64,000 bases of DNA from Auanema rhodensis (taxonomy: Eukaryota; Animalia; Nematoda), in contig OZ059897.1 of NCBI GenBank assembly GCA_964057225.1, forward strand, positions 10,478,001-10,542,000, given 5' to 3'. The stretch's first letter is position 1. Each line of letters starts with the position of its first letter. The translations under genes were made by a program, and so were the position numbers. Under the pieces are notes generated by a model. The model made no database searches and was not told where the DNA came from. It saw only the letters and a list, made by a program, of their open reading frames with translations. Positions 23,932-27,764 of the stretch are shown piece after piece.

Positions 23932-23940
23932 TGGCCCAAG
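23932..23940 (+). repeat. Target-site duplication, left copy TGGCCCAAG (tRNA positions -2 to +7)
   Basis: The identical 9-mer flanks the element on both sides and occurs once per uninterrupted T-2 unit. Confidence 0.96.
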
Positions 23941-24165
23941 GGCCAAACTAAATTGACATGTGTGAAAATGACTCGATATGTAATTGACATAGTGAAATAT
24001 ATTGGTTTAATTGACATGTAAGATCAATACCGTATTGAATGTTAATGACATTGTAATAATGACATTAATTGCGTTTGACTAAAATGTGCAAATTTGAATA
24101 TTGCGTACCAATTTAGGTAATTTTTTCACAAAAAAATTTTGGGATTTTCCGATATCGATTCATTT
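23941..24165 (+). repeat. Left terminal inverted repeat (225 bp)
   Basis: Reverse complement of 27466-27690. There is one mismatch across nt 14-225 (nt 126) and 7 mismatches in nt 1-13. Confidence 0.97.
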
Positions 24166-24186
24166 TTTCCCAATAGAAGAAAGGAA

Positions 24187-27100
24187 ATGAAGCCGGTTTC
24201 GAAAAAAATGCTGTTGCAATTTTTCAATGACAGGTAGATCAGATGGTTTTGTTTGTTTTGTTTACACATTCTCACATTCAAAGAAATTATAATGTAATGG
24301 AAGAGCTTCCGCGTTTGAAATATTTTCCTGCTGGTGATACAGTTTATTTGGTAGCTTCGAGCAGCTTCAGAGATTTGAAAGATGTGACAACTGATTCGGC
24401 ATCTCCATGGACGGGAAAACTAAGTTTGAATTGTTATATGTTTTATTTTTTTAATTGTTACGTAGTTTATGACGAAAAATCGCACCGTGATTTGAAAACT
24501 AATATTGAGTACTTATATGTGGATAAAACGGATGAGCAATGGATACCTGTTAAGAAGTCTTATTTAACTTTCAAATTATTCCTTAATACTAACCCCAGAT
24601 ACCCTTCTTTACAACGCCGTGTTAGTTATTTTTGTCAATAAAATGTTTTTATATTCTATCTTTACACAGGTGGGAGTAATTCTGGACATGAATAAAAACG
24701 CTGTCTCTCCAATTTTATACTACTACTTTGCTGAAGTAAGGTTTTCATTATTTTTATGTTCACATGATTACTTGGATCTCTATTATTTGTATTTCATAAT
24801 ATTCAGGAGAACCTCACAATATCCCCATCAAACTCGATTCGAATCAAACCATCTGAATCAGCTGCTGCTAAAAAAGCGTTATCTCATCGAACTACCGTGG
24901 GAGCAAAAAGATTTCTTGATGAACAGGGATTAAATATTAATACAAAAAAAGTCATTACAGTTCACTAATCAAAATTATGTATTATTTTTCAGTTAACAAA
25001 TTTAGCCCGTTCCGTCGATTATCATATAAAAAGTAGAGTAGGAAAAAAAAGTGCATCGAATGTTGCAAAACTGTTTGATCGGTTTGTTTGCAAACCCAAT
25101 TCATTAGAAGCTATGCTTTCTCCACATGTTGAAAAAACAGGTTTATGTAAATTAGTAGTATTCATGACCTTAATCAGTCTTTTAGAAGATGGAAAAATAT
25201 TAATACGTCAGATATTTTTTTACCCGTGTGCCTTAGAACATTTTTGTAAAACTTTGCCTGACAAAAACGATGTTATCGAACATAGAAATAGAGTTGATAA
25301 ACTGCTACTAACAACTAAAGAAGATGCAGAACTGGAGCTGAGTGAGCATGAAGATGTTTTTTAGGTTTAATGAGTTTATTGTAGACAGAATTATTTCAAC
25401 AACTAATAAATCAGGAACAATTCCCAAGCTGGGTTCGATGTTGCAAATTGATACTACTTTTAACGTTTGTAGCAGTGAATATTTAACAATGGCCGTAGGA
25501 ATACACGATACTTTTTTGTGAGATTTCACAAACTATTTTGAAATGTAATATATTTAGAAATAATGTATCTGGAAAATGCGCAAGTGTATTAATTGGAGCT
25601 ATGATACATACAAGTAAGGCTGCCAAAGAACATGAAGCATTCTCAATAGCGTTGAATAGTCAGTTTGAGAAATTCGGATCAAATAAAACTATTCCTTGCG
25701 TAATCACTGATGGAGAGGAGTCGTTCAAGTTGTACACTACAGTAAGTACTGTTGAACTTGTGGAATCATTAAAGTTAGTTTAGGGTTCGTTTCTAAGTAG
25801 ATCAGTACCTTTGCGATGTGACGTACACAAGTTTGACAACTTGAAGATGAACATGCACAAATCGGATAGAGAAAATACAGAAATTATCAAAAAAAAATTA
25901 TTTGGATCAAAAGAAAATGTAGGCACGTAAAGTTTTAATTGAGTTGAAAAGTATATTTTAAGAGTATCAGTGGAACTATATGGCACCGCGGTATATTAGG
26001 AACTCTTCAGAAATCTGAATTTGAAAAAAAAATGATGAAATTTAGTGATGCTGTACATGCTGACACAGCAAAATGGTGGGTTAATATTCAACATTTTTTC
26101 CTTGTGTTTGAATAAAAACAAAGCATGATATTTGTAAGCATACTAATATAGATATTATAAATTGTGCTGAGAGAAAAATAGAATTGTTGTTTAGGTTACT
26201 TCGAAATATGGATGATATGTACAACACATGTTCACTTATCAAGAAGCTCTACGCTGGCTGTCCTTTGCAATGGGCCACAACAAATATCATCGAGTTGAGA
26301 AATAACCAACTCAAAAAAATTGTACAATATCCTCAACCGGCGGAAATACTAATGAAAAGTTTATTAATTATACATCATGGTACTTTTTTCAAATCACATT
26401 TAGATGATACCACAGCACTGTGTTCTAATAAGTTAAATATTTACAGATGATATGAAAGAACGCATATTTGCTATTCAGAACAAAAGCCAAAATTTAAAAA
26501 CTGCAATTCCGTTGAACATGAATTTTGAAGATCTTTCTTGTTCGGAGCAGAGAACTTTAGTAGAGAAATTTGGATTATATAGCTATTATATTTCTTTATC
26601 TTATTTTAAGTTTCCGAAATGGACATTAGACGGTAAGAAAAAGTTAATAACTATTCATTATACTAAATAATAATAGGAGATGGCAAAAATAAATCAAACT
26701 TTTTGTCAGCTGTAGAGAAACTCTCTGTTGATAGCTGCAGAAATGATGAGAATTTATATATAGTTCTAGATGAAATCGATCTGAGAAGGTATTCGATTTT
26801 TCAGTGAATAATGAATTATTTTTTAAGACCCGTTTGCGTGAAAAAAACGGAGAACCAACTCAAATGTTTTCATTACGAATGTTTAAATAACATTAATTAT
26901 GGATATTATTTCTGTATACATATGTGAGGTTTCAAAAGATATTTTGAAAGACAATTTTATTTTTAGGTTCGCTATTCTTAAAAAACTTGAAGATTCAGTT
27001 GCAGATCACTATATAAAAGAGATGGAAGATAAAAAAAATAATAGAACAGCGCAGAACTGTTTGAGTAAACAAATACGACCCACAGATGGTTCGAAGTTCC

Positions 27101-27414
27101 AAAACCGTAAAGGGAGACAATATTCAAAAAATAATTATAGTAGGCAAATTGCAGAAACTAAGTTAAGTTGTATATAAAACAGTTGTCTTAACATTTTTTT
27201 CAGTATATCCTTTCTTGAAGACACAAGTGAACTGCATGAGATTATTTTTAGTGACAGATCCAATTACTCCGATGATAGCTCAGAGAATTTAATCACGAAC
27301 ACTTTTACAGAAGACAGAATAGTTTCGCCTCCACTAGAATATACGTCTTTGAACAACTCTCAACCATATCAAGATAATGAATCAATTTTCTGGTTTCCAC
27401 CTAGTTTTGAATAA
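24187..27414 (+). CDS. MULE-type DDE transposase, predicted 801 aa, 17 exons
   Basis: Manual exon model: 24187-24233, 24284-24423, 24466-24620, 24670-24735, 24807-24950, 24993-25140, 25186-25341, 25385-25517, 25558-25741, 25784-25926, 25971-26075, 26195-26379, 26447-26632, 26677-26788, 26828-26923, 26967-27161, 27204-27414. Total 2,406 nt, all introns GT-AG, phases consistent, no internal stop. Motifs: LQIDTTFNV (D308, 25450), VITDGE (D381, 25709), LRCDVH (CxxH, 25817-25828), WATTNIIELRNNQLK (E507, 26292), and C-x4-C-x10-C-x-H (26865-26921). Exon 1 and the two in-frame stop-free introns (2 and 6) are the least certain parts. Confidence 0.88.
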
Positions 27415-27425
27415 TTTTCATGGCT

Positions 27426-27431
27426 AATAAA
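27426..27431 (+). promoter_or_regulatory. Putative polyadenylation signal of the transposase gene
   Basis: AATAAA 11 nt after the predicted TAA and just inside the right TIR boundary. The AT-rich background lowers specificity. Confidence 0.55.
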
Positions 27432-27465
27432 ATTTAATTTTAAAGTACAATCCTATTATTCTGTG

Positions 27466-27690
27466 AAATGAATCGATATCGGAAAATCCCAAAATTTTTT
27501 TGTGAAAAAATTACCTAAATTGGTACGCAATATTCAAATTTGCACATTTTAGTCAAACGCAATTGATGTCATTATTACAATGTCATTAACATTCAATACG
27601 GTATTGATCTTACATGTCAATTAAACCAATATATTTCACTATGTCAATTACATATCGAGTCATTTTCACACATGTCATTCTGACTTTACC
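27466..27690 (-). repeat. Right terminal inverted repeat (225 bp)
   Basis: The reverse complement reads GGTAAAGTCAGAATGACATGTGTGAAAATGACTCG...GATATCGATTCATTT, matching the left end. Confidence 0.97.
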
Positions 27691-27699
27691 TGGCCCAAG
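27691..27699 (+). repeat. Target-site duplication, right copy TGGCCCAAG
   Basis: Directly follows the terminal CC of the right TIR. Confidence 0.96.
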
Positions 27700-27764
27700 T
27701 AGTATAGTGGTTAGTACTCCACGTTGTGGCCGTGGCGACACAGGTTCGATTCCTGTCTTGGGCA
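27693..27764 (+). tRNA. tRNA-His(GTG), canonical copy regenerated by the target-site duplication directly downstream of the transposon
   Basis: The TSD supplies T-2, G-1 and G1-G7. The rest is canonical (G10, G53, CTTGGGCA) and is followed by T6. Confidence 0.95.

Follow-up and report, generated by a model that had tools for sequence, protein, structure and literature searches.

An intron-dense, probably Mutator-like transposase gene in a DNA transposon inserted into a nematode tRNA-His array

Results

The element and its copies

The stretch of DNA analysed here, called the window below (64 kb; C5:10478001-10542000 of a 181-Mb assembly, G000, with contigs labelled C1, C3, C5, C6, and C7, which was also the target of all genome-wide searches), is a tandem array of a 332-bp unit with 182 intact tRNA-His(GTG) genes, unit identity of 95-96%, and G+C content of about 30%. 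Within the window, the array (positions 1-23940 and 27691-64000) is interrupted only once, at 23941-27690, by a 3750-bp DNA transposon with terminal inverted repeats (TIRs) and a transposase gene that we predict to consist of 17 exons separated by 16 short introns. The array extends at least 90 kb further, and a second copy of the element is located inside it at C5:10591600.

The termini of the element (23941..27690, plus strand), GGCCAAAC... and ...GACTTTACC, are common to three copies with different flanks. On both sides the element is bordered by a 9-bp target site duplication (TSD), TGGCCCAAG (left, 23932..23940; right, 27691..27699), covering positions -2 to +7 of tRNA-His; comparison with the array shows that the left TSD contains a unit-specific T at a position where the array consensus is C, and this T is duplicated on both sides. 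An intact tRNA-His(GTG) gene lies directly downstream (27693..27764, plus strand), its 5′ end having been restored by the duplication. Each TIR is 225 bp long: the left one (23941..24165, plus strand) consists of a 13-nt asymmetric tip and a 212-nt perfect arm (23954-24165), and the right one (27466..27690, minus strand) of the arm at 27466-27677 and a 13-nt tip. The arms are 100% complementary, whereas the 13-nt tips differ from each other. Each TIR carries five direct TGACAT repeats, at TIR positions 14, 45, 72, 106, and 120 (0.17 expected), with none in the gene body, and the paralogue described below retains the one at position 14. These repeats are likely transposase-binding sites.

The genome contains three full, near-identical copies of the element. 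The window copy and that located 90 kb away in the same array differ solely by a 3-bp indel, and the third copy, residing in a 5S rRNA array on contig C3, has 11 substitutions. The 9-bp TSDs of the three copies are different (TGGCCCAAG, GTAATATCG, and CCATACCAC), and thus the copies represent separate, recent insertions; both the TSDs and the flanks argue against their origin by segmental duplication. As the paralogue also has a 9-bp TSD, CGTTGAAAG, four independent insertions with this TSD length are observed.

The spliced gene model

The first-pass annotation had claimed that 16 introns of given lengths join scattered open reading frames (ORFs) into an intact transposase of 801 amino acids. 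A script looking for GT..AG introns of these lengths, in this order, across 24187-27414 reproduced the claim, yielding, after splicing of 16 GT-AG introns, 801 open codons followed by a stop, with all 17 exons free of stops in their phase. The frame alone allows for 48 solutions, introns 2, 6, 10, 11, and 12 each having two to three possible placements; these ambiguous placements were initially selected by the better appearance of splice sites and afterwards fixed by the diverged paralogue. The resulting introns, based on the frame and the paralogue and all on the plus strand, are 24234-24283, 24424-24465, 24621-24669, and 24736-24806 (introns 1-4); 24951-24992, 25141-25185, 25342-25384, and 25518-25557 (introns 5-8); 25742-25783, 25919-25962, 26076-26194, and 26380-26446 (introns 9-12); and 26633-26676, 26789-26827, 26924-26966, and 27162-27203 (introns 13-16). 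Their lengths vary from 39 to 119 nt (median 43.5), their G+C content is 25% vs. 34% in exons, and their density, 16 per 2406 nt or 6.65 per kb, matches the earlier figure of about 6.7. Plus-strand ORFs of the region are 59-132 amino acids long. The exons span 22-70 codons, whereas chance open stretches at 30% G+C would average, by our estimate, only about a dozen codons, and hence the exon stretches are not due to chance.

Conservation of the gene structure within the genome

The closest paralogue sits in the 5S rRNA array on contig C3 and shows 66-69% DNA identity and, exon by exon, 62% amino acid identity to the element. All 16 introns of the paralogue have the same positions and phases and are GT-AG; the aligned boundary holds unchanged at 14 of them, and two were shifted by hand by 3-4 nt to the nearest GT/AG. 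Its spliced frame, 839 codons, is open only after these two shifts. In the global alignment, 14 out of 17 exons are identical in length and gap-free, whereas intron length differs in 14 out of 16 cases (e.g., 119 vs. 44, 71 vs. 46, and 67 vs. 45 nt; the median in the paralogue is 42 nt). The proportion of nonsynonymous differences between the two genes (pN) is 0.24 vs. 0.77 for synonymous ones (pS, saturated), and thus purifying selection has acted on the protein in both lineages.

Exon-by-exon protein searches revealed about 40 further relatives in the genome, at 32-55% amino acid identity. In the 26 loci read, each of exons 5-13 and 16 produces a match of its own, and most neighbouring matches are 38-64 nt apart. 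A comparison of intron positions among homologues, proposed in the first-pass annotation, thus yields all 16 positions in the paralogue, and introns 5-12 at the same places in about ten diverged families, with one loss, that of intron 9. In the family of L028 and L051 lacking this intron, exon 9 runs straight into exon 10 (L051:975-1427, L028:1173-1490); this is intron loss, and perhaps also gain, within a transposon lineage. The same family has a 42-nt in-frame extra segment within exon 9, and L028 has TAG in exon 12. Another locus, L048 (C3:11862833-11866012), is decayed, as it has in-frame stops in exons 7, 11, and 16, and hence not every family is intact.

Homologues in other genera

A profile of exon 12 built from 15 family members (alignment A2) and searched against 1.84 billion representative proteins produced 11 matches only, four of them long. 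The long homologues are unnamed products of Auanema sp. JU1783 (P0001; CAI4220887) and Caenorhabditis nigoni, and L3Y34_019319 and CBG00011 of C. briggsae; database labels of the Caenorhabditis and Auanema homologues are just "hypothetical protein" or "unnamed protein product." That the nearest proteins belong to these two genera agrees with a rhabditid nematode as the source of the DNA, and the 5S rRNA sequence is also of the nematode kind. No account of this lineage turned up in literature searches. The window exons are collinear with all four proteins, and in P0001 they abut without gaps: exon 5 ends at residue 180 and exon 6 starts at 181, exon 6 ends at 228 and exon 7 starts at 229, and exon 9 ends at 386 and exon 10 starts at 387. 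Hence, a separate annotation pipeline applied to another genus joins the same pieces at the same places.

Exons and motifs of the predicted protein

All exons are on the plus strand. Exon 1 (24187..24233) provides the start codon and the beginning of the protein, MKP..., kept in the paralogue. Exons 2 (24284..24423), 3 (24466..24620), 4 (24670..24735), and 14 (26677..26788) are stop-free and present in the paralogue, exon 2 also matching residues 21-63 of P0001. Exons 5 (24807..24950), 6 (24993..25140), and 7 (25186..25341) recur in the paralogue and in distant families, and correspond to P0001 residues 132-180, 181-228, and 229-261, respectively.

As had been claimed, the candidate catalytic residues lie on different exons, namely, 8, 9, 10, and 12, all of them found also in the paralogue. 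Exon 8 (25385..25517) contains the first D (MLQIDTTF) and is supported by distant families and annotated homologues, exon 9 (25558..25741) contains the second D (VITDGEES) and is supported by distant families and P0001 residues 326-386, and exon 10 (25784..25918) contains CxxH (RCDVH, in LRCDVHKFDN) and is supported by distant families and P0001 from residue 387. Exon 12 (26195..26379), bearing the E (TTNIIELRNNQLKK; QWATTNIIELRNNQLKK), is supported by the family alignment and annotated homologues. Exons 11 (25963..26075), 13 (26447..26632), and 16 (26967..27161), the latter encoding a basic stretch, are shared with the paralogue and distant families. Exon 15 (26828..26923), kept in the paralogue, encodes a zinc-finger-like motif Cx4Cx10CxH, a SWIM-like variant, and the C..C..CxH block is likewise present in the Caenorhabditis homologues.

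Exon 17 (27204..27414), also supported by the paralogue, encodes an acidic, Ser-rich tail that ends with IFWFPPSFE and the stop codon. The paralogue, L027, shares the C-terminal IFWFPPSF (27385-27411; in L027 near 422, minus strand), and the acidic linker preceding it differs between the two in length and sequence. The WFPP motif was found in this nearest paralogue only, the other families being without it; IFWFPPSF may be a short docking motif. A candidate polyadenylation signal, AATAAA (27426..27431, plus strand), is read in the sequence 11 nt past the stop codon. At 24164-24177, 9 nt upstream of the start codon, TTTTTTCCCAATAG resembles a nematode 3′ splice or trans-splice acceptor; it is not kept in the paralogue.

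Landing sites

Every copy is located at the 5′ end of a tRNA or 5S rRNA gene. The window copy is flanked by duplicated tRNA-His positions -2 to +7, and the tRNA behind it is intact. The second copy is inserted precisely between positions -1 and +1 of another tRNA-His, the third one at 5S positions 9-17, and the paralogue, in the opposite orientation, at 5S positions 17-25. In more distant families, the elements directly adjoin the 5′ ends of tRNA-Leu, tRNA-Arg, tRNA-Gly, and 5S genes, and the insertion positions range from about -9 to +25 around the gene 5′ end. Since an identical element uses three unrelated 9-mers and two kinds of genes, the RNA polymerase III (Pol III) transcription complex seems a likelier target than a DNA word. 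As far as we found in the literature, landing at Pol III gene starts has been described among DNA transposons only for Dada.

Two further groups of relatives are found at tRNA genes of contig C7. Three related elements, about 4005 bp apart (C7:10178029, 10182036, 10186041; L036-L038), are each followed by a tRNA-Arg(ACG) gene, and it looks as if the element-plus-tRNA unit itself was amplified in tandem. At C7:15.99-16.08 Mb (L040-L045, L049), copies of a related family reside in a 177-bp tRNA-Leu(AAG/TAG) array; several of them start abruptly at exon 10, with the same breakpoint, L045 being fuller, and a 5′-truncated copy seems to have spread along with the array.

Discussion

Assignment to a superfamily

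We consider it very probable that this is an autonomous cut-and-paste transposon with one gene, recently active as judged from its sequence, and belonging to a very divergent lineage of Mutator-like elements (MULEs) that, in the searched databases, is represented in rhabditid nematodes only. The assignment is based on motifs, their spacing, TSDs, and TIRs, and on language-model and structural look-alikes of the homologues. The TSD length, 9 bp in four insertions, agrees with the approximately 9-11 bp of MuDR/MULE elements, as do the long TIRs (225 bp, 212 nt of them perfect). The catalytic Asp-Asp-Glu (DDE) set with CxxH between the second D and E is invariant in alignments A2 and A3, and its approximate spacing, D-72-D-23-CxxH-101-E, resembles that in a Pfam-positive MULE from the same genome (67/19/97); the block TTNxxExxNxxxK is present as well. 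On a relative's ORF spanning the second D and CxxH, PF10551 produced a weak match in the right register (E-value 0.06-0.08), and two full-length homologues produced weak matches to IS256 NCBIfam models (0.007 and 0.05). In the ESM Atlas, all nearest neighbours of the Auanema and C. briggsae cores belong to MULE/FAR1/ZSWIM clusters (score 0.96, 176-178 shared features), and the Atlas model of P0001 aligns with these clusters at template modeling scores of 0.64-0.78 over about 210-237 residues. Taking all this into account, the protein can be regarded as a putative, very divergent MULE-like DDE transposase that the Pfam MULE model does not detect. The intact transposase gene claimed by the first-pass annotation is thus borne out, as an open frame with MULE-type motifs inside a real, young DNA transposon.

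Several observations weigh against this assignment or against the gene model behind it. The first-pass annotation had named Pfam models PF10551 and PF04434 as a check; in exon-by-exon Pfam searches neither these nor other models were significant, and PF10551 produced no match on the four full-length homologues. Alignment of profiles by hhalign with the genome's own MULE covered the E motif alone, with 1.5% probability, which is not significant. The AlphaFold model of a homologue, built from a four-sequence alignment, is poor (predicted local distance difference test 42). The Atlas results are leads obtained from homologues rather than from this protein; more generally, the homology evidence for MULE comes from the homologues, and profile searches of the window gene were run exon by exon. 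The Auanema and Caenorhabditis homologues are themselves gene predictions, and splicing at the 16 junctions is deduced from sequence. A profile of the four homologues found nothing relevant among the Protein Data Bank sequences, a word-based protein search with the same profile returned two of its own members only, and tblastn of the genome's intronless MULE ORFs against the element found nothing. The SWIM zinc finger CxCxnCxH is present in many MULEs, but not in all of them; in our case, exon 15 has Cx4Cx10CxH and no PF04434 match. A lead to DUF7747 was not confirmed, as the real DUF7747 matches in the genome come from one unrelated locus. This host locus (C7:15178417-15181970) contains several tandem DUF7747 (PF24927) domains and is the sole strong match in the genome.

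Alternative explanations

Both the gene model and the superfamily could be explained otherwise. With GT and AG frequent and 48 placements allowed by the frame alone, one might suspect a pseudogene in decay, or short ORFs lined up by chance, the "introns" being an artefact of fitting GT..AG pairs. We regard this as hardly credible: the paralogue, despite saturated synonymous sites, keeps all 16 positions and phases, its frame being open after the two 3-4-nt shifts, indels fall in introns, not exons, and counterparts of the exon blocks are found both in about 40 relatives within the genome and in annotated proteins from two further genera. The Dada superfamily, whose members insert in multicopy tRNA, small nuclear RNA (snRNA), and 5S genes and have multi-exon transposases, is another candidate, as every copy studied here is located in a tRNA or 5S array, the gene is multi-exon, and the C/DxxH motif is common to Dada and MuDR (PMC3706591). 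However, Dada elements have TSDs of 6-7 bp rather than 9 bp, DxxH after the second D in place of CxxH, present in all members here, proteins of about 1400 amino acids vs. 801, and lengths of 4.7-11 kb vs. 3.75 kb (PMC3706591). Moreover, Dada recognises primary sequence inside the gene (PMC8869645), while the same element here occupies different sites, three 9-mers in tRNA-His and 5S genes, and the Atlas look-alikes of the homologues are all MULEs. Hence, multicopy small RNA genes as targets fit Dada, a fixed site does not, and membership in Dada appears very unlikely.

The first-pass annotation suggested that the introns might help the element to evade silencing or allow tissue-specific control by splicing, as in the P element. 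They would then be adaptive for the transposon: efficient splicing would mark the transcript as "self" and shield it from germline small-RNA silencing, or else regulated retention of one intron would limit the active enzyme to particular tissues. Such ideas are reasonable, given that the germline silencing of Caenorhabditis elegans transgenes depends in part on their introns (PMC4947018, PMC7725773). The transposase introns look like ordinary host introns in size and density: in host myosin genes, exon matches are about 40-50 nt apart (introns of about 44 nt), with roughly four to six introns per kb. Despite deep divergence of the families, their intron positions persist, a single loss having been seen, and introns 2 and 6, the only ones with lengths that are multiples of three and without in-frame stops, could each be retained with the frame kept. 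On the other hand, the introns of a DNA transposon are passively duplicated together with everything else in it, so that their conservation is the null expectation and retention needs no special selection or adaptive explanation. The same genome also maintains a thriving intronless, Pfam-positive MULE family with uninterrupted ORFs of 658-701 amino acids in at least 12 places, and thus persistence here does not depend on introns. No single intron is conspicuous in the way the third one of the P element is. Therefore, we consider an adaptive role of the introns unlikely. In the intronless family (L012-L019; e.g., C6:11321439, C1:11618547, C3:12929846), five sampled copies are 99-100% identical; its long N-terminal part is Ser/Pro-rich, with no BLAST similarity to the intron-rich lineage.

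Intron positions are common to families with only 30-50% amino acid identity, and hence the layout is old and inherited: on this comparison, the intron-rich architecture is best described as an old trait of the lineage. The suggestion that the element had adopted host-like gene architecture holds as regards intron size and density, but not as a recent change.

Proposed mechanism

Transcription presumably starts in the left TIR, which would contain the promoter, and the host spliceosome would remove the 16 short introns to produce an mRNA for the 801-amino-acid DDE transposase. In the predicted protein, exons 1-7 encode the N-terminal region and exons 8-12 an RNase-H-like core carrying D, D, CxxH, and E, whereas exon 15 contributes the zinc-finger-like motif, exon 16 the basic stretch, and exon 17 the acidic tail. 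The enzyme probably binds the TGACAT repeats in the 225-bp TIRs, and integration would proceed via a 9-bp staggered cut at the 5′ ends of tandem Pol III genes in this genome, the targets more likely being chosen via the Pol III transcription complex than via a DNA word. One might speculate that the intron-dense gene and landing in Pol III arrays are co-adapted halves of one persistence strategy, where splicing licenses the transcript as "self" and Pol III tethering confines insertions to redundant genes, the lineage remaining active without harm to the host; we find this improbable.

Implications and comparison with known systems

The intron-dense, Pfam-invisible variant of Mutator-like transposons is new, and is an example of how an entire, probably active lineage of DNA transposons can escape routine annotation: for ORF finders, the gene is no more than pieces of 20-70 codons, and even annotated full-length homologues go undetected by the Pfam MULE model. 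The expectation of the first-pass annotation that ORF-based searches for transposable elements would miss this gene is thus correct, and applies to Pfam-based searches as well. About ten families with common intron positions and one loss provide a natural series on intron behaviour in a mobile gene, and the intron-rich lineage and the intronless MULE of the same genome form a clean pair for asking whether introns shield genes from silencing in the nematode germline.

Similarly to the MuDR/MULE superfamily, the element has the DDE set with CxxH, the TTNxxExxNxxxK block, and a zinc-finger-like motif behind the core; differences are the zinc finger itself, Cx4CxnCxH instead of CxCxnCxH, and the lack of significance of PF10551 and PF04434. 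Maize mudrA has three introns, vs. 16 here. With MuDR/MULE elements including Tm1 of root-knot nematodes it shares 9-bp TSDs and long TIRs with internal short repeats and, with Tm1, asymmetric outermost terminal motifs; unlike Tm1, which shows no target preference, this lineage occupies the 5′ ends of tRNA and 5S genes (PMC3169594). Dada elements also live in tRNA, 5S, and snRNA genes and have multi-exon genes, e.g., 11 exons in Dada-U6_DR, which makes the statement of the first-pass annotation that transposases usually have few introns too strong (PMC3706591). Their sites lie around the A box or the anticodon, whereas here one element uses both tRNA-His and 5S genes (PMC3706591, PMC8869645).

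The Drosophila P element is likewise a DNA transposon whose transposase needs host splicing; it has three introns, and germline-specific removal of the third one controls its activity, whereas no regulated intron can be singled out here. Finally, insertion near Pol III gene starts, whatever the sequence of the gene, is a trait shared with Ty3 and Ty1 of yeast and TRE5-A and DGLT-A of Dictyostelium, and points to the transcription complex, and not a DNA word, as what is recognised. These are retroelements targeting Pol III genes by means of an integrase or target-primed reverse transcription, whereas the element described here is a cut-and-paste DDE transposon with putative tethering.

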